From: Prasinococcaceae sp. CCMP 1430
Lineage: Eukaryota; Plantae; Prasinodermophyta
Direction of reading: 5' to 3'
Length of the DNA: 13,296 bases
Assembly: GCA_013416795.1 (NCBI GenBank)
Contig: RQSC01000359.1
Coordinates: forward strand, 2,817 to 16,112
Shown here: piece after piece, positions 1-10,661 of the stretch
Position numbering within the stretch: position 1 is the first letter of the stretch
Layout: each line of letters begins with the position of its first letter
Program-made: the position numbers and the translations under genes
The notes under the pieces: generated by a model
Databases searched by the model: none
What the model saw: the letters and a program-made list of their open reading frames with translations, nothing else
Told to the model about the DNA's origin: nothing

Positions 1-1680
1 GACGCCGACGCCGCCGTCGCCTCGCCCGCCCGCACCGACACGCCCCCCGCCGTGGCCCCGCTCGACGCCGAGGTGTCGCCCGAGGCAAGCGTCACATCGC
101 CCGACGCGCCCGTCGCCGCCGCGCCGCTCGCCAGCGAGAGCGCGCCCGAGGAGAGCCCTCCGGCCGCGGTGCCCACGCGTGCAGCGCCACTCACGCCCGA
201 CCCCAGCGCTGCCACGCCCGACGTCAGCTCCAGCGCGCCACCGACACCATCGGCGCCGGCCGCGCCCGCCGACGCGACGATGGCACCTCCGATCGCGCCG
301 CCGCTCGTGTCCCCGGCGGAGCCCGCGGTGAGCGAGACGGCACCGCCGGCCGTGGTGCCGTTGCCGGCGGCGAGCGCCACCGAGCCCACCGACGCCTCCC
401 CCGCGCCGCTCGCGATGAGGACGTCGCCGCTTGTGGCCCCGCCCGCGGCTGCGCCGCTGCGAACGCCGACGGCACCGGACGCTGCGCCAACCCCTGCGGC
501 GTCGGGCGTGCTCACGAAGACCCCCCCGCTGGCGCCGCCGCCGTCGCTGGAGCCGCCTGATACAAGCACCGCCGAGCCATCGACGCCCGCGGCCCCGCTC
601 GAGCCGGGCGCAATGACCACCGCGCCGGCTCCGCCACCGGCGGAGCGTCCGGTGGAGAGCACCAGGTCGCCGCTCGGGGCGCCCGTGCCGGCGGAGCCAC
701 CCGAAGTCACGAGGACGCGACCCGACGCCGACGAGCTGTCGGTGCCGTTGGCGTCGCCCGATGCGACGGTGACGGCGCCAGTGCGCGACGACACCGCGCT
801 GGCAAGCGTCGCCGCGCCGCTCTCGCCAGCGCCAGCGTCTGAGGCACCGCCGCTTCGGAGCTCGAGTGCGCCGCCGAGCAGGCCGCGCGAGGAGCCGCCG
901 TGCACGCGCGCGGCCCCGCCAACGCTCGTCGCGAGCGCAGCTGCAGCTTCGCCACCGACGAGCACCGCGTCGCCGCCCGCAAGAGCGCTGCTCGCGCCCC
1001 CGGAGAGACGCGCGATACCGCCACTGCTCATCACACCTTCACCACCGCGTACGGTGACTTCGCCGCCAGGCGTGCTCGAGCTCGGCGAGGCGCTGCCGCC
1101 GGACACCACCACCTGCCCCGGCGCGGCGCTGCCCTGGCCGCCGGACACGCGCACGCTGCCGCCGACGGTGCTCGCACCTCCGGACAGAACCACGTCTCCC
1201 GCGCTCGCCGTCGCCGCTGCTGTGCCGTTTCCGTCGCCCACCTCGCCCGTGGCGAGAACGATGTCCCCCGAGGCGCTTCCGACACCTCCCACGCGCGTGA
1301 GCACGCTCACACTACCGCCGGTGCCGAAGGCGCTCGCGCCAGCGGACAGCGTCACCCCTCCGCCTGCACCGAATGCGCTGGCATCGCCCGACGCCACCTT
1401 GACGGCGCCGCCAGCGCCGCCGGAGAGCGCCGCCCCTGCCGCGACCGTCACATTGCCGGCGCCGCCAGCCGCCACGTCGCCAGAGCGAATGGCAATGCCG
1501 CCGCTCGTGCCCTGGTCGGCCGTCGCGTCGCCCGATGCCACAACAACGTCGCCCGACGCTACCGCGGCGTGAGCAGTGCGCACCACCGCGTGGCCTGACG
1601 CGCCGCCTTCGCCGCCGCTGCCCGAGACGAGCAGTGCGTCGCCGCCCGCACCCGTCTGGTCTGACGCCGCTCCACCGAAG
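1..1680 (-). repeat. Coding tandem repeat of about 30-33 degenerate units, [SGA]G-x-[VLIA]-x-[VLI]-x-[SATG]-G plus a Gly/Ala/Ser linker, period about 14-20 aa
   Basis: Translated units include SGDVVVASGD, SGGIAIRSGD, AGNVTVAAGA, GGAVKVASGD, SGDIVLATGE, GGSVRVSGGQ, GGEVTVRGGE, SGDLVLSTGR, GGAVSLTAGS, SGDVTLASGD and AGGVSVRAGE. Confidence 0.9.
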
Positions 1681-4428
1681 ACTGCGGCCGCACCCCCCGC
1701 AGCGGCGCCCGCGCCACCGACGAGCGCGGCGGCGCCGCCGCCGCCGACGCTCGCCGCGCCACCAGCGACGCGCGCGAGGCCGGCGGCGCACATGCGCACA
1801 CACGCGCCTCCTGCGTTCAGCACGCTGGTCACAGCCACGTACTGCTCGACGGTGACCGCAGCACCCGCGCAGGCCCCTGAGCCCGCGATGCCGTCTGCGG
1901 TGCAGCCGCGGAGGATGGCCGTGTGCGCGACCGCGGGCACTGGCGTCTCTCCGCACACCAGCGTCTCCGAAGCGGTGCACGCGGTGCCCTCGCCGCCCTC
2001 TTCCCCTCCGAGCTCGCCTCCAATCAGTCCGACTCCCGCGCTCGCCGGACCGCCGACCCTGCCGCCCTCTGCCTGAAGCCGCGCCTCGAGGAGCGCGCCG
2101 CCTACGCTCTCGCTCTCTCGCGCATGCACGCGCGCGCGCATCGCCGGGTTCTGCTGCGCCTCGCTTCCGCCATCGGCGTCCGGCCACAGTTGCAGCTCCC
2201 TCGCTGCAACCTTCGACCCACGCGTGTTGATGTCCCCGAAGGAGGGCTCGATTTCGCCGGCAACGAGCGTACCGGCGAAGAGCGCTGTTTGCAACGTGTT
2301 GGACACCGACACGGTGCTCGCATTGATGCTCCCGCCGCCCTTGAGCGTGAAGCCCCCCTGCACGTCGATGCCACCGTCTGCCGTGAGCAGCTCGGACGCG
2401 CTGAGGGAGGCGACAGCCACCGACCCCTCAAACTCGGTGCTGCCTGCAAATAAGGCGTCTCCGGACGCGCGCAGCTTGCCGAACAGGAGCGTCTGGCCCT
2501 CGACCGTGAGCGCGAGCGCGCTGCGCACGGAAGGGTCGCCCACCCGCGCGCGCCGCAGCGCGTGCACCTCCGACAGCAAGGTCTCGCCAGACACGGCCGC
2601 GCCGCCGCCCACCAGAAGCGAGAGCTCGCCGGCATCGAGCGCATCCACAATTGCCGCGTCCAAGTCCGCGCCCGCTTCCAGAAGGCTGCGCCTACTGCTG
2701 GCGCCAGTGACGGCATCGGCAGCCGCGGCTGCTGGAGCGCCTGCGAGCAGCAGCGGGGTGCGCACGCCGCCTTCGGCGCTCAGCGTAGCGAGCGTGCGGA
2801 CGCTGGCGTTGAAGCGCGCGGGCGCCCCCACGTCGAGCGCCACGCCGGCATCGCCGTCGGCCCCCGACGCCGCGCCAGGCCTCACGACGATGGCGCCCGT
2901 CGACGTGAGTGTGCCCTGCACCTCGGTGTCCACTAGCGTGGCCACCTCGCCGCCCAGGATGGAGCTAATCGTGCCGCTACAGTTGGCATTGCCGTCAGCA
3001 CCGCCGGTGCAGCCCGTGCGCGTGACCAGTTCAAGTGTGCCTTCGAGGCGCAAGGTCGCGTTGGTGGCGAGCGACAGGGTGCCATGTGAAGACAGCGAGA
3101 GCTTGCCCGCGGGAGCGCGCAACGACAGGTCGCCACTGGCCTCGACCTCCGCGCCACTGAGGAGCAGCTCGCTTCCCGCCTCGGATCGCCCGCCGAGCAA
3201 CTGCAGCGGCCCGCTCTCTACGCGAGCGCCGCCGACAACGTGCAGCGCGCTGTCGGCGTGCGGCGGCGCCACGTTGATGCCTACGCGCGCGCGCTCGTTC
3301 GAATCGGTCAGCAGCGGCATGAATGCCGTCGCGCCTGCGCTGGCAATTTCCAGCAACGTCTCGTGCACCCCAGAGGAGGAGGCATCGCCGCCGCCGCTGT
3401 CGTCGTCTTCGAGCAGCGTGCGCCGCGCCTGCCCGCTCCCCGCTGCGTCCGCGCCGGCGCTGGCGCCGCGCGCGAGAACGGCGCTCGCCCGAATGGCCGC
3501 TGAGGGCCTGAAGAGCTCCGCAGGTGCAGCTGCGCCGATGCCTTCCGTGAGCGCGGCATCAAATTCGCTGGCGACGGAGGTGTAGGTGCCGAGCTCTAGG
3601 AACTGATCAGTGTAAGCACGTGGTGCGTCCGCCGAGCTCGAATCTTCGCCCTCACCCGCGTCGGTTGCAGGGGCCGCGAGCACGGCGGCGCCGTGACTCG
3701 CGACGCGCACGTGAGCGCGCGCGGCAGTGCTGCCGCCGTCGGCGCCGCCCGTCCGGCGCTCGAAAAAGTTGCCAAAGCTGCCAGTACCGGCCGGCGCATC
3801 GAAGACCTCGAGGCCCGAGTTGAGCGTGACGCGGTCAGGCAGGCGCCAGAGCTGGTTCGTGGTGCCCACGACCAGCGCACCGCACCACAGCACCAGCGCG
3901 GCGTGCAGCACGAGTGCGACCAGCCCGGCCGCCAGCGCCACGCAGCGCTGCACCGGGTCGGGGCCGAGCTCCTCCGTGAGCGCGAGCTTCAAGCGGTTGC
4001 CGGGAGCGACGCCGAGCTGAAGAGGCGGGGTTGGGTGGGTGAGAGGGGTGTGGGGGGGGGGACGGGGAGGGATGGGATGGGGATGGGTGAGGGCGGGCGA
4101 GCGCGGTGTGAGGACGCGCGCGCACGCGCCGTCGAGCGCGTGCGCGGCCGCGCGAAGGGCGCGGCCGCGGAGGGCGCAGCAGCGCATCGTTCACCTTCAG
4201 TCCCTGGAGGAAACCCCTGCCGCCTCCGCCTCCGCCCGGGGTCGACACGCGGCTCTGCGGCAAACCCCTCGAATTGAGCGGCAAGCCGTCGCCGCCGTAT
4301 TCCTCGTCGCCGTCGGCCTCCGCCGCACGCCTCTGGCGCTCGAGCTCCGCCCGGCGGCGCGCGCCTACCAGCTTGGCGGACACAATCTCGCTGTGGTTGA
4401 GCGGCACGACCGCGTTCGGTTGGGCCAT
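1..4428 (-). CDS. Giant predicted type II single-pass membrane / cell-surface protein with Gly-rich repeats. Exon 1 is 4428-4195, exon 2 is 4016 to <1. At least 1416 aa, 3'-partial.
   Basis: I scanned the minus frame whose codons map to + triplets starting at positions divisible by 3 and found no stop from 4016 to 1. Exon 1 (MAQPNAVV...FLQGLK, 78 codons) splices in phase 0 (AAG|GTGAAC ... TCTTCAG|CTC). One hydrophobic segment, CVALAAGLVALVLHAALVLWCGALVV, lies at 3944-3867. Eight N-x-S/T sequons follow it. The ORF track probably missed this frame because it has no stop inside the window. Confidence 0.9.
4017..4194 (-). other. Spliceosomal intron of the giant gene (178 nt)
   Basis: GTGAAC donor, pyrimidine-rich 3' half with CTCAC, and TTCAG acceptor. 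Removing it joins the ATG exon in frame to the 4-kb open frame. Confidence 0.75.
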
Positions 4429-4547
4429 CGCGCGCGGCAGGCCGTTCCCTCCCTCCCCGGCCCACACACACGCCCACCCACACCGCTGCCGCCGGCCGCC
4501 GGCCTCGCCATCCAGTACGCACGCCAAGCTGAGGCTCGTGCCGTGCG

Positions 4548-4845
4548 AACACACACACAATACACACACGCACACGCACACGCGCTCGCGCGGCGCGTGA
4601 GCGCGCGCGAAAATCGCCCATCAAAACGCACGCGAGCGCGCGCGCGCGCGCGCGGATTGAGGATTGCGCGCACGCGCGCGCGCGCGCGGCCCAACCGCCC
4701 ATCAAAACGCGTGCGGGTTTTCACACACACACACGCACACGCACACAATTACACACACACGCGCGCAAGCACACGCACACACGCCCTCTCGCGCGCGGGA
4801 TTGCGCGCGCGCGTCGCTGCAATCCCCTATCAAACCGCATGCGAG
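4548..4845. repeat. Low-complexity (CA)n/(CG)n modules, each ending in an 18-bp motif copy
   Basis: CA tracts at about 4549-4580 and 4723-4783, CG tracts between them, and motif copies at 4617-4634, 4698-4715 and 4826-4843. Confidence 0.7.
4617..4843. promoter_or_regulatory. Three copies of the candidate cis-element CCCATCAAA[A/C]CGCATGCG
   Basis: CCCATCAAAACGCACGCG, CCCATCAAAACGCGTGCG and CCTATCAAACCGCATGCG, about 190-415 bp upstream of the giant gene ATG. A regulatory role is inferred, not shown. Confidence 0.5.
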
Positions 4846-7363: not shown

Positions 7364-8518
7364 TCACGCCTGCTTTGGGACCTTGACGTCCGTGGTCTTC
7401 GCAGAGCTCGCTCGGATGAAGGTCCTCACGAGCATCACCGCCGCGACCACGCCGGCGGCGCCGATGCGCGTCTTCCCCTCCGGCGACAGGCTGGCCACCG
7501 CCGGCAACGCATATGTCCACATCAGGTAGGCGTACGCGCACACCCAGAAGAGCGCGATGAGGAGCGTGTCGAGCCGCCGCGGGGCACCGACGTATTCGGG
7601 CGCGTCGAAGCGGTTGGCCTTGGCGTGCGCCTCGAGCGCGGCGTCCTTGCTGCGAAAGAGATCCAGGCACCACTCCTTGAGCTCGTGCTCACCCTCGGGC
7701 AGCTCCTTGGCGTCGATGCGGCGCACGTGCACGTGGATCTCGGCCGGGCGCCTGCAGAACAGCCCGAACAGGCTCGGCGCGGGCTTGCCCTCGGCCGGCA
7801 TGAACGTCACGTCGTACACGGCGTCGACCGACTGCGCGAGGTTGGACGCGACCGCGACGAAGCCGCGCGTCTTGGGCACGAGCGTGTGCTTGGGCACGGG
7901 CATGCCCTTGGACTTCGCGAATTCCTGCGCGATTTTGAGCTTGTTGTGCGTGAAGCGCGTGCCCTCCGCGAACAGCACGAGCATGTACGGCAGCGGGCTC
8001 GCGTTGATGTTCGCGAAGCTGCGCAGCATGAGATCCTTGTCCTTCATCCAGTTGCGCGTGATGAAGACGTACCCCGACAGCCACCAAAGCGTGCCCAGCA
8101 CGGGCACGAAGAGCGCGCTCCGCTTCATGATCGCCCTGTACGACCCCAGCGCGCCCACCCGGATGCCCACCGCCCAGCCGGTGAGCCAGTCGATGTCACT
8201 GCGGTGGTTGCACATCATGATGCCGTTGTCGCGGCCCACCGCCTCCCACGCGGCGGTGTCGCCGTAGCAGCGGAGGTTTACGCCCGCCCACCACTCGGGC
8301 ACCACCACCAGCGAGTTGGCGGCCAGGGGCACCAGCGCGGCGCAGCACCGCTCGAACCACTCGCGGCGCAGGGGCCACAGCACGGCGAACAGCACGAGGA
8401 GCACGGCCGTCACGCAGGCGCCCGACAGCAGGAACGGCGGCAGCAGCAAGACGGTGCACGCGGCGACGTTCGCCCCCTCCGCGAGCTTGGTCAGCGCCGA
8501 TCGCTTGGAGGCGCCCAT
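7364..8518 (-). CDS. LPAT2: 1-acyl-sn-glycerol-3-phosphate acyltransferase (PlsC family, plant ER LPAT2/3-like), single exon, 384 aa
   Basis: Block I CNHRSDIDW, block III FAEGTRFT, plus LVPKTRGF and VYDVT. Hydrophobic segments at both termini. ATG 8518 (MGASKRS) is preferred over 8743 because the upstream extension is low-complexity. The subfamily label comes from motif recognition only. Confidence 0.9.
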   Translation of the reverse strand: MGASKRSALTKLAEGANVAACTVLLLPPFLLSGACVTAVLLVLFAVLWPLRREWFERCCAALVPLAANSLVVVPEWWAGVNLRCYGDTAAWEAVGRDNGIMMCNHRSDIDWLTGWAVGIRVGALGSYRAIMKRSALFVPVLGTLWWLSGYVFITRNWMKDKDLMLRSFANINASPLPYMLVLFAEGTRFTHNKLKIAQEFAKSKGMPVPKHTLVPKTRGFVAVASNLAQSVDAVYDVTFMPAEGKPAPSLFGLFCRRPAEIHVHVRRIDAKELPEGEHELKEWCLDLFRSKDAALEAHAKANRFDAPEYVGAPRRLDTLLIALFWVCAYAYLMWTYALPAVASLSPEGKTRIGAAGVVAAVMLVRTFIRASSAKTTDVKVPKQA

Positions 8519-8796
8519 CGCCCGCCGAGCCCTCCCCCCCCCTTCCCCCCCCCCCCTCGTGCTCCCTCGCCCGCCCGCCCGGCGGGCAGTGCGCCCCCTG
8601 CCGCGCCCGCGATCGACCGCGACCCCCCCCTCTTCCGTCCGGGGATCTCCCTCCCTCCCTCTGGTTCCGCGTCGCGCTCGCGCTGTGGGCGCTTCCCCCC
8701 GCCCGCGCGCGCGCGCCACACGACGGACGGGGGAGCCTCGCATACCAACGCCCGCGCACTCATTGCGCGGCCGGCGGGCGGTGGCCGGCGGGGCGC

Positions 8797-8925
8797 CTGG
8801 CTGGCTGGCTGGCTGGCTCAGCCAGGCTTTGTTGGATGGTGGCCCGGGATGGGATGGGGATGGGGATGGGGATGGGAGTGGGATGTGGGATGTGGGATGT
8901 GGGATGTGGGATTTGGGATGTGGAT
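8797..8925 (+). repeat. Microsatellite cluster: (CTGG)5, GGGAT/GGGGAT units and (GGGATGT)n
   Basis: Read directly: 8797-8818 and 8846-8925. Confidence 0.9.
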
Positions 8926-9009
8926 GGGTTGATGGGGGCGGGAGGGCGGGCTGGCCCGCGATCCGGCCTCATCGGTCGGCGGCGGCAAACAGACGCCGCC
9001 GCGCCGACG

Positions 9010-9036: not shown

Positions 9037-9167
9037 TATGATGACGTAAAAAAATCGGCGGGATGCGCAGCGGAGGAAGAGCGCGTCCGCGGCCGTTTGA
9101 AAAGGTGCGCGGCCGCGCGCGCCTTATGCCGCGCCGGAGGGAGGGGGCGAGCGACGCATGCGGTTTG

Positions 9168-10661
9168 ATGGGCGAGCCGGCTCGCGAGCGGAGGCGAGGA
9201 GCGCCCCTTGGGGGGAATGCGGGGCAGATTCGAGAGCGCCAGCGAGGCGAGCGCGTGCGGGCGCTGCGGGAGGGGGGGGACGGGCGGACGGGGGGAAAAG
9301 GGGGAAGGGGAGGACCGCCGCGTACGCTACCGCCTCCGCCGTCGCCCGCCACCGCGCTCCCCGGCGACGGCGCCTCGCGCTCCCTCACGGTCGCGGCGAC
9401 CGCCGTCGAGGGGCCGCCCGCGTCGTTCGCGCACCAGCTGCTCGACGCCGGCGCGGGATCGATCATCCTGCTGCTCGCGACGGCCGTCTCGATGCTGCTC
9501 GCCAACGTGCCCGCGACGTCCGAGTTCTGGACGGGGCTGTGGGACATGCACGTCGGGCCCGCCATGGGCGCGCACGCGCTCACCCTGCGCGACTGGGTCA
9601 ACGAGGGGCTCATGTGCCTCTTCTTCTTCGTGGTCGGCCTGGAGATCAAGCGCGAGTGCGTCTTCGGCTCGCTCAGCTCGCTCAAGAAAGCCGCGCTGCC
9701 GTGCATCGCGGCGGTGGGCGGCATGGTCGTGCCCATGGGCTTCTACGCCGCCATCAACGCCGGCGTGAACGGCGTCATGCAGGGCTGGGCCATCCCGATG
9801 GCGACCGACATCGCCTTCGCCATGGGCATCTTCGGCTTCTTCCGCAACCGCATGCCGGCGGCCGTGAGCGCCTTCCTGCTCACGCTCGCCACCGTTGACG
9901 ACCTTGGGGCCATCTTGGTGATCGCCGTCTTCTTCGCCGGCTCGCTCAAGGCCGCCTACCTCGCCGGCGCGCTCGCGCTCTCCGGCGCGCTGTTCGCCAC
10001 CGACCGCATGGCCCTCGACACGGCGCGGTCGGTCAACGTGGGGAAGTACCTCATTCTCATGCTCGGGCTGTGGTACTGCCTGCTCCTCGGCGGCATCAAC
10101 GCGGACGTGGCGGGCGTGGTCGCCGCCGTCGCCATGCCCGCCGTCGCGCCCGCGCCGCAGGGCTCCACCGCGCCGCCCGAGCACCCGGGCGAGCCCGTGC
10201 GCATCATCGACCACCTCGTGCACAACTGGTCGCCGTGGACCACCCTGGTCATCATGCCGCTCTTCGCGCTGGCCAACACGGCCGTCCCGCTCGACGCCTC
10301 CCTCATCAGCGGCCTCATCTCGCAGCCCGTCGCGCTGGGCATCGCCGCCGGCCTCGTGCTGGGCAAGCCCATCGGCATCACGCTCTTCTCGCTCGCCGGC
10401 ATCAAGGCCAACGTGGCGGCGTGGCCCGAGAAGATGAACGTCAAGCACCTCGTTACGGTGGGACTCCTGGGCGGCATCGGCTTCACCATGAGCCTCTTCC
10501 TCATCACGCTCTCGCTGGCGGGCATGGACTCTGCGGCGCGCCTCGCCAAGCTCTCCATCATCGTGTCCAGCACGGTGGCAGCGCTGGCCGGCGCGGCCAT
10601 CATGTCCACCTTCCCAGTGAACGAGGAGGACAGGCCCGCGGCGGCAGCGGCGGCGGCCTAA
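9168..10661 (+). CDS. nhaA: NhaA-family Na+/H+ antiporter (bacterial type). Start uncertain: in-frame ATGs at 9063, 9126 and 9168; the conserved core begins at about 9430.
   Basis: Motifs WVNEGLMCLFFFVVGLEIKRE, GWAIPMATDIAFA, TVDDLGAILVIAVF, PLFALAN, GKPIGI and GGIGFTMSLF. These cover E. coli D133, D163/D164, K300 and G338. Multiple TM segments and no intron in the core. Confidence 0.94.
   Translation: MGEPARERRRGAPLGGNAGQIRERQRGERVRALREGGDGRTGGKGGRGGPPRTLPPPPSPATALPGDGASRSLTVAATAVEGPPASFAHQLLDAGAGSIILLLATAVSMLLANVPATSEFWTGLWDMHVGPAMGAHALTLRDWVNEGLMCLFFFVVGLEIKRECVFGSLSSLKKAALPCIAAVGGMVVPMGFYAAINAGVNGVMQGWAIPMATDIAFAMGIFGFFRNRMPAAVSAFLLTLATVDDLGAILVIAVFFAGSLKAAYLAGALALSGALFATDRMALDTARSVNVGKYLILMLGLWYCLLLGGINADVAGVVAAVAMPAVAPAPQGSTAPPEHPGEPVRIIDHLVHNWSPWTTLVIMPLFALANTAVPLDASLISGLISQPVALGIAAGLVLGKPIGITLFSLAGIKANVAAWPEKMNVKHLVTVGLLGGIGFTMSLFLITLSLAGMDSAARLAKLSIIVSSTVAALAGAAIMSTFPVNEEDRPAAAAAAA

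Follow-up and report, generated by a model that had tools for sequence, protein, structure and literature searches.

A three-exon gene of a marine picoalga predicted to encode a membrane-anchored, Gly-rich fibre with a phage-related C-terminal knob

The minus strand of the window (the whole 13,296-nt stretch of contig RQSC01000359.1 analysed here, from Prasinococcaceae sp. CCMP 1430) carries most of a genuine nuclear gene from a high-GC marine alga: its first three quarters fall inside the window. The gene has three exons, and its predicted product is 1,843 aa long. On balance, this product is probably a type II membrane-anchored extracellular fibre that would most likely be adhesive or wall-linking. 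The gene model, its conservation, the domain order, the repeat periodicity and the homology of a C-terminal knob to a phage domain were all computed here. Protists often have giant surface proteins of repetitive sequence, so an orphan fibre by itself is unsurprising. What is gained is a resolved, comparatively validated model for a gene named in no protein collection and, if the alga is Prasinoderma (PMC7455551), a concrete candidate component of its wall or surface.

Gene model and comparison with an intron-less ortholog

A frame scan of the window found the minus strand free of stops over positions 3..4190, a run of 1396 codons. At 73% GC, stops make up ~1.6% of random triplets and the expected stop-free run is ~63 codons, which places an open frame of this length far beyond chance. 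The frame is missing from the program-made list of open reading frames because it runs past the window end; its absence from that track had been remarked on in the initial annotation, which had also proposed a 4016-nt stop-free minus-strand exon preceded by a 78-codon first exon. This structure was borne out both by the open frame and by an ortholog that is contiguous over the junction. The window takes in the whole of exon 1 and of intron 1 and the greater part of exon 2, which opens in frame at 4016 (minus strand):

4195..4428, minus strand: exon 1, 78 codons, predicted cytosolic N-terminal tail, starting at ATG 4428
4017..4194, minus strand: intron 1, 178 nt, phase 0, C-rich, GTGAAC...CTCTTCAG

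The ortholog (L001) comes from an uncultured relative, has no introns, shares about 45-50% identity and the same domain order, and encodes ...GFLRGLK-LGVPPGNRLKLAL... without a break exactly over the proposed exon 1/exon 2 junction. At the sequence level, this comparison proves the two-exon model of the part in the window. The gene was completed on a Tara metagenome scaffold (L003) that is conspecific, being 99.07% identical to the window over 4,501 nt, where three exons (234+4346+949 nt, or 1,843 codons), a second intron and a TAG stop were found; the length of at least 1416 aa given initially was thereby extended to that of the full product. The second Cys module, second array and knob described below lie outside the window and were taken from this 99%-identical scaffold, not from the assembly that contains RQSC01000359.1. 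An early stop just beyond the window had been named beforehand as evidence that would speak against the protein. An in-frame TGA does occur 331 nt past the window end, but it sits inside the GTGAGT donor of intron 2, and the ortholog, which is contiguous at both intron positions, continues there.

Composition followed the order GC3 > GC1 > GC2 in the minus frame, and a codon-usage score favoured this frame in both exons and fell within intron 1. GC3 periodicity alone does not discriminate between the strands, the plus-strand antisense frame having a common wobble position. The minus strand was assigned because the reading frame is unbroken in two species, because the GT-AG introns are canonical on this strand only, and because divergence from the ortholog was ordered by codon position as expected for coding sequence on this strand (position 2, 0.31; position 1, 0.36; position 3, 0.56). 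A summed tblastx score favoured the antisense frame, an artefact of low-complexity repeats and the shared wobble position that is resolved by the codon-position divergence. The unspliced start at ATG 4187, chosen by prokaryotic gene callers in L003, was rejected because it is the spliced form that agrees with the ortholog, and because the codon score drops in the intron. ATG 4428 is the first ATG downstream of an in-frame stop on the minus strand; the first 58 residues that follow it are not conserved in the ortholog, leaving aa 59-78 as the only conserved part of exon 1, and the true N-terminus is therefore uncertain. An introner-type kinship of introns 1 and 2 was likewise discarded (local score just 33), and neither a tRNA scan nor an Rfam scan of the window gave a match.

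It is highly improbable that the open frame is a by-product of high GC or a pseudogene from which no protein is made. Many frames do stand open at 70-79% GC, such as 1-1569 and 2077-3582 on the plus strand, and no annotation or named protein for the gene was found in the protein collections searched. The 1396 stop-free codons nevertheless argue against such an origin, as do the ortholog with its conserved domain order and codon-position divergence, and antisense frames that are interrupted by stops at different sites in the two species. Excision of the two canonical introns restores the ortholog's sequence exactly. Within the species, pN/pS between the window and L003 was 0.38 (18 non-synonymous and 19 synonymous changes), which also speaks for a protein, and intron 1 differed at 4 of its 178 positions, near the synonymous rate. 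Metagenomes held 10 full-length variants of the exon-3 product.

Membrane anchor, spacer and ectodomain

The first part of exon 2 was divided as follows, with identities to the ortholog:

3945..4016, minus strand: predicted cytosolic juxtamembrane segment at the start of exon 2, aa 79-102, 81% identity
3867..3944, minus strand: transmembrane segment or signal anchor, aa 103-128, 58% identity
3783..3866, minus strand: predicted exoplasmic juxtamembrane motif QLWRLxDRVxLNxGLEVFDAP, aa 129-156, 75% identity
3375..3782, minus strand: acidic spacer of variable, low-complexity sequence rich in Ser, Gly and Ala, aa 157-292, 39% identity, 40 of its 136 positions being unaligned
1986..3374, minus strand: conserved, orphan beta-rich ectodomain, aa 293-755 (about 460 aa), Cys pair 414/424 and sequons conserved

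Together with aa 59-78, the cytosolic juxtamembrane segment forms the most conserved stretch of the protein, and the spacer has many indels between the orthologs. In agreement with the initial annotation, aa 103-128 proved to be the only strongly hydrophobic segment among the 1843 residues (Kyte-Doolittle 19-residue maximum 2.6). No signal peptide was found in the protein, the single transmembrane segment lying 102 aa from the N-terminus. The eight sequons counted earlier beyond this segment were recovered exactly in type and number (NAT, NCS, two NAS, NVT and three NGT); they take in 8 of 18 Asn residues, an excess over the shuffle mean of 3.2 (P=0.007). Eight conserved paired Cys and the conserved sequons NAT397 and N481 all lie C-terminal of the membrane segment. 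As the charges on either side of it are nearly balanced, orientation rests on the Cys and sequon arguments, which are consistent with the type II (N-in) single-pass layout proposed at the outset.

Gly-rich arrays and their Cys modules

The ectodomain is followed by a Cys module and the first of two repeat arrays:

1785..1985, minus strand: Cys module 1 with six Cys conserved in the ortholog, aa 756-822, putatively capping array 1 at its N-terminal end
3..1784, minus strand: Gly-rich array 1, aa 823-1416 in the window and on to about aa 1462 outside it, about 35 units of ~16 aa in the window

The Gly-rich array had been described as running off the window, and does so from about aa 823. As a whole, array 1 comprises about 38 units of a 16-aa repeat, s-G-x-V-x-V-x-s-G, in which the second V may be L and which is completed by 6-10 small residues. 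It is followed outside the window by a second Cys module, an array 2 of about 10 units and the 118-aa C-terminal knob, giving about 48 units in both arrays together. Periodicity was 16 with harmonics at 31-33 and 47-49, and the flanking Gly residues were near-invariant (position -2 in 42 of 45 units, +5 in 38 of 45). The arrays align with the ortholog almost without gaps at 55-63% identity (array 1, 55%), and so the number of units and their register are conserved. A second copy of Cys module 1 follows further along the protein (score 263 versus 129 +/- 12 for shuffles); the modules occupy the positions expected of solenoid caps and were duplicated along with the start of the array. The 16-residue Gly-rich repeat, with its duplicated modules of putative disulfide caps and its conserved repeat count, is undescribed.

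AlphaFold 2 models were of low confidence: pLDDT stood at 34.7 in the model of the N-terminal ectodomain and at 48.3 in that of the array, and Cys module 1 was the sole part of either model to reach pLDDT 70-80. The array model placed a short strand every 14-17 aa (pLDDT 48, mostly <50) and at this low confidence aligned with generic beta-solenoids, its VIA matches indicating only 'solenoid-like'; a Foldseek search with the low-confidence models gave no match. Because of this low confidence we infer, rather than show, a beta-solenoid rod, in which the stacked arrays would extend over roughly 10-25 nm.

Database searches and comparison with known systems

No Pfam match was found for the whole ORF, for four sub-pieces of it (E up to 10) or for the C-terminal parts of the ortholog, and PDB sequence and profile searches gave chance-level matches only (e.g., a T4 gp5 beta-helix chimera, E 0.26). 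When the ectodomain was compared with 1.84e9 protein representatives using phmmer, one relative cluster was recovered, and the ectodomain profile had no matches among JGI metagenome contigs or in IMG/VR. A word-index search with the array region was blank, which is weak evidence as low-complexity candidates probably swamped the search. Together with the Foldseek result, these searches uphold the earlier statement that the protein could not be assigned to any characterised family.

Bacterial beta-solenoid adhesins, namely the autotransporters Ag43 and TibA, the TPS adhesins FHA and EtpA and the trimeric heads of YadA and UspA1, bear no sequence relation to the algal protein. Their repeat families (Pertactin, Fil_haemagg, YadA_head/Hep_Hag, Chlam_PMP) were absent by Pfam hmmscan at E up to 10; GGA[ILV] occurred 10 times (shuffle mean 2.9) and FxxN 0 times. 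The unit of ~16 aa differs from the 19-20 aa of Ag43, TibA and FHA and the 14 aa of YadA. Unlike these adhesins, the algal protein is eukaryotic and spliced, with predicted disulfide-rich caps and an N-terminal transmembrane helix as its anchor; in place of a C-terminal beta-barrel translocator or TPS secretion domain, it has a phage-like knob at the C-terminus, and its introns are spliceosomal. In bacterial ice-nucleation proteins, repeats of 16 residues are organised at a higher order of 48 residues; the algal array has the same period of 16, shows harmonics close to 32 and 48, and is likewise predicted to form a beta-solenoid built of small residues. The likeness is numerical only, however, as the consensus is unlike theirs and Pfam Ice_nucleation gave no match, and no Thr/Ser-x-Thr ice-binding ladders were noticed in the array by eye.

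In the single-pass yeast proteins Wsc1 and Mid2, a short cytosolic tail is joined across the membrane to a long, glycosylated rod outside the cell, which ends in a distal head containing Cys; they are type I, and their rod is Ser/Thr-rich and O-mannosylated. The algal protein would share this overall layout, a likeness of functional analogy only, but would have the opposite topology, and it has a Gly-rich periodic array and no sequence similarity to them.

The C-terminal knob and its phage relatives

aa 1726-1843 (118 aa), minus strand, outside the window: knob, homologous to a phage C-terminal domain

Profile comparisons point to clear homology between the knob and the C-terminal domain of a modular phage head-module family. 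This family (P0006-P0125) is unnamed and metagenomic; its members are about 190-340 aa long and encoded directly after the major head protein, immediately downstream of it in three contigs. With hhalign, the knob matched the phage C-terminal domain at 96.6% (E 4.9e-10) and 97.2% (E 3e-11) over 100-103 columns, and all 20 shuffled controls stayed at or below 1.5%. With hmmsearch, scores were 37.6 and 22.6 bits versus at most 7.8 bits in 400 shuffles. The homology spans the last ~105 residues and ends at the C-terminus in algal and phage proteins alike, with LTA(T/S)G, AP-x-(A/V)GDEL and a terminal A-x-S-x-x-R-(W/Y) as common motifs.

The phage proteins are small and have a conserved N-terminal module of their own (DALVLDADGDT...IDIE...ADDF), whereas the algal protein lacks this module and has gained two conserved Cys in its knob. 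As the family HMM aligns confidently to the knob only, the algal protein is a carrier of the C-terminal domain and not a member of the phage family. This family counts at least 2,324 uncharacterised members, with no PHROG, Pfam, PDB or INPHARED match among the relatives. Most of its 77 loci in IMG/VR have the N-terminal module alone in common, which would be expected were the C-terminal domain a distal module open to exchange. A scan of GTDB genomes found the family on two MAG contigs only, and no host was therefore inferred. Study of either the knob or the phage protein would inform the other.

Proposed role and alternatives

In the reading we favour, the short cytosolic tail and the strongly conserved juxtamembrane and transmembrane region would hold the protein in the plasma membrane. 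Outside it, a flexible spacer and the orphan beta-rich domain would carry the rod, formed by the two disulfide-capped arrays of 16-residue Gly-x-V-x-V-x-Ser-Gly units (~48 in all), which would present the knob at its far end. By analogy, the knob is the likeliest binding end of such a fibre, a putative 'binding knob' that would grip wall or matrix material or other cells. A more specific version, which we regard as doubtful, is that the picoalga acquired an exchangeable distal domain from a phage head module and displays it at the end of its own solenoid fibre, which is Gly-rich, disulfide-capped and anchored in the membrane; this phage-derived module would bind bacteria, or else glycans of bacterial or wall origin, and keep them at the cell surface. 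If true, this would be a phage-to-eukaryote domain transfer giving rise to a new class of eukaryotic adhesin in an early-diverging marine lineage.

The same layout could instead serve as a wall-integrity sensor or membrane-to-wall tether, Wsc1/Mid2-like with opposite polarity, in which the rod acts as a spring or ruler, the knob sits in wall or matrix and the juxtamembrane segment relays force to a cytosolic partner. The cytosolic juxtamembrane segment and exoplasmic motif exceed every extracellular domain in conservation, suggesting that a partner is present at the membrane; the arrays have kept their length and register; and the wall is thick, with a composition that is not known, if the alga is Prasinoderma (PMC7455551). 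Nevertheless, Pfam found no known signalling motif or domain in the tail, its distal 58 residues are unconserved and the protein bears no relation in sequence to WSC or Mid2-type proteins, and we consider this role, drawn by analogy, rather unlikely. It also appears quite unlikely that the Gly-rich region, instead of folding into a rod, is a spacer that is disordered or elastomeric, or else a cross-linked glycoprotein of the wall resembling the plant glycine-rich proteins. A composition of 26% Gly, 23% Ala and 14% Ser, the pLDDT mostly below 50 and the lack of a detected repeat family would suit such a spacer, but not the hydrophobic pattern that recurs regularly every 16 aa, flanked by near-invariant Gly, the Cys modules at cap sites duplicated together with the array start, or the in-register, almost gap-free alignment with a 50%-diverged ortholog. 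Disordered low-complexity regions rarely retain register, and in place of the (GGX)n or unregistered GX of plant-type proteins the array keeps its 16-aa period, V-x-V cores and register. The topology, solenoid fold, geometry and adhesive or tethering role of the favoured fibre are predictions, and its 16-residue repeat arrays are a good target for structure determination.

Gene structure and strand

The window has a GC content of 67-79% and open frames are plentiful in it, but one minus-strand frame lacks stops over 3..4190 (1396 codons versus ~63 expected). As described in the initial annotation, this frame is absent from the ORF listing, the sole reason being that it runs past the window end. 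The 78-codon first exon proposed previously proved exact: it extends from ATG 4428, the earliest ATG downstream of an in-frame stop, to 4195 (minus strand), and exon 2 continues in frame from 4016. The 178-nt, C-rich intron between them has a GTGAAC donor and the 3' end CTCTTCAG. Both exons favour the minus frame by GC per codon position and by a codon-usage score trained on the adjacent NhaA and acyltransferase genes, and the score falls within the intron. The genes adjoining the fibre gene are eukaryotic.

Genes adjoining the fibre gene (window coordinates)
7367-8968, minus strand: AGPAT/LCLAT-type lysophospholipid acyltransferase, PF01553 with the eukaryotic Acyltransf_C (PF16076)
9045-10658, plus strand: NhaA-type Na+/H+ antiporter, PF06965, E 1e-112, single open frame; an antiporter of bacterial type within an algal genome
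10927-11778, minus strand: archease (PF01951); only profile positions 82-136 are present in this frame, which thus represents a single exon of a split gene

Plus-strand frames open over 1-1569 and 2077-3582 are antisense shadows that have their wobble position in common with the minus frame, so GC3 periodicity is unable to decide the strand. Their higher summed tblastx score was misleading, as it was caused by low-complexity repeats, and antisense coding was rejected. The minus strand was established by a frame that is unbroken in two species, where antisense frames are interrupted at differing places, by divergence from the ortholog that was lower at codon positions 2 (0.31) and 1 (0.36) than at position 3 (0.56), and by introns that are GT-AG on the minus strand only.

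Ortholog and completion of the gene

A phmmer search of the ectodomain against 1.84 billion representative proteins returned a single cluster, P0001, from marine metagenomes (48% identity, E 2e-73). A near-complete ortholog is present on the longest contig of this cluster (L001, 70.5% GC); it is intron-less at the junction and encodes the joined sequence ...GFLRGLK LGVPPGNRLKLAL... exactly, which, at the level of sequence, is direct comparative proof of the exon 1/exon 2 splice. Searching with the C-terminal part of this ortholog recovered P0005. The Tara scaffold encoding it (L003) matches window 9..4509 at 99.07% identity, is thus from the same species, and reaches 1.6 kb beyond the left end. 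The leftward extension suggested previously as a means of finding the stop was completed on L003. The in-frame TGA met beyond the window sits inside the G|GTGAGT donor of a second intron (173 nt, 3' end CTCTCAG); the following exon restores exactly the sequence of the intron-less ortholog at that point, and a TAG then terminates the frame. The three exons contribute 234+4346+949 nt to the finished coding sequence, which encodes 1,843 aa.

Within the species, pN/pS was 0.38 (18 non-synonymous and 19 synonymous changes), the intron diverged at approximately the synonymous rate, and the last-exon product has ten full-length variants in metagenomes. Together with the completed coding sequence, this comparative evidence shows that the gene is real and under constraint; that the open frame is an artefact is extremely improbable.

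Both introns (window 4017-4194; L003 4915-5087) are missing in the ortholog of the related uncultured alga (L001 560-600 and ~4690), indicating intron gain or loss after the lineages split. Introners were ruled out, as the two introns are unlike each other. A one-base frame change at L001 2986-2990 relative to L002 (same taxon, another sample) is probably a G-run assembly error or a polymorphism.

Protein layout and repeat arrays

Layout of the fibre protein (full-length residues; identities versus the ortholog)
1-58: distal cytosolic tail, without conservation
59-102: cytosolic juxtamembrane segment, 81% identity
103-128: TM, 58% identity
129-156: exoplasmic juxtamembrane motif, 75% identity
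157-292: acidic spacer, many indels
293-755: orphan beta-rich domain, 50% identity
756-822: six-Cys module 1
823-1462: array 1, 55% identity, 608/640 positions aligned
1463-1557: six-Cys module 2
1558-1725: array 2, 63% identity
1726-1843: C-terminal knob, 50% identity, outside the window

The main features of the initial annotation were all recovered: aa 103-128 is the only hydrophobic segment, the eight sequons C-terminal of it agree in number and type, and the sequence is Gly/Ala/Ser-rich from about aa 823 to the window edge. The sequons are modestly enriched (8/18 Asn versus 3.2 expected, P 0.007). The array period is 16 residues, with harmonics near 32 and 48, and units fit the consensus s-G-x-V-x-V/L-x-s-G, after which come 6-10 small residues, with Gly at -2 in 42/45 units and at +5 in 38/45. 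The Cys module and the start of its array form an internal duplication (score 263 versus 129 +/- 12 in shuffles).

The C-terminal knob and a phage protein family

The search with the ortholog C-terminus also matched small metagenomic phage proteins of ~195-210 aa (P0006-8; E 2e-5 to 4e-4, 5.8e9 sequences), which have motifs in common with the knob. In hhalign, the knob matched the phage profile at a probability of 96.6% (E 4.9e-10) and a 120-member alignment at 97.2% (E 3e-11), while 20 column-shuffled controls reached at most 1.5%. The phage family HMM scored the two algal proteins at 37.6 and 22.6 bits (400 shuffles, at most 7.8 bits). Two Cys that are conserved in the algal knob are missing from the phage proteins.

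At E <= 1e-3 the phage family has at least 2,324 members, none of them named, and no member matched Pfam, PHROG, PDB or INPHARED. In three contigs its gene lies directly 3' of the major head protein gene, within a head module that runs terminase, portal, scaffold, cement-like protein, major head protein; further on come small genes for connectors and one for a tape measure.

Loci of the phage family
L004, 6177-6761
L005/L006, 8001-8999
L009-L085

Across the family the N-terminal module (DALVLDADGDT...IDIE...ADDF) is conserved and the C-terminal domain is variable. Most relatives at 77 IMG/VR loci have just the N-terminal module in common (residues about 32-90) and a subset carries the knob, a pattern that fits a virion-attachment module whose distal domain is exchangeable.

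Proposed role

A type II anchored extracellular fibre is the reading we favour as the most likely, and we infer its topology, fold, location and ligand. The conserved juxtamembrane region would fix the fibre in the membrane and perhaps oligomerise or couple it; the spacer and orphan domain would lead out to a solenoid rod with disulfide caps, about 48 units in all and ~23 nm long at one unit per rung or ~12 nm at two, and the phage-type knob displayed by this rod would be the binding end. The best-conserved parts of the protein are the juxtamembrane segments flanking the TM (window 3783-4016 and 4195-4254, minus strand; 75-81% versus ~50% overall), which hints that the protein either has a partner at the membrane or oligomerises there. 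The same conservation speaks for a wall-integrity tether or sensor, a minor possibility beside the anchored fibre. A disordered or elastomeric Gly-rich spacer appears unlikely.

AlphaFold2 models from shallow alignments gave a pLDDT of 34.7 for aa 290-830, with the Cys module alone at 70-80, and 48.3 for aa 750-1416, with a short strand each 14-17 residues. The better argument for a folded rod comes from sequence: register and unit count are kept between orthologs, Gly/hydrophobic periodicity is strict, and a cap-like disulfide module starts each array.

Repetitive anchored surface fibres are already familiar as a general kind, but no description of this repeat type, its cap modules or its phage-like tip was found in the literature or databases searched. 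The protein represents an undescribed family that is restricted to its lineage and known from two taxa. In Prasinoderma coloniale, GC content is 69.8% and the wall, whose composition is unknown, is thick (PMC7455551).

GT/GC-rich simple repeats occupy window ~4540-4800, upstream of the fibre gene, and a (GGCGGGCGGCCGGC)n run lies past its stop (L003 6100-6195). Approximately ten metagenome contigs of the locus all terminate near 6.1-6.2 kb, presumably breaking at simple repeats.
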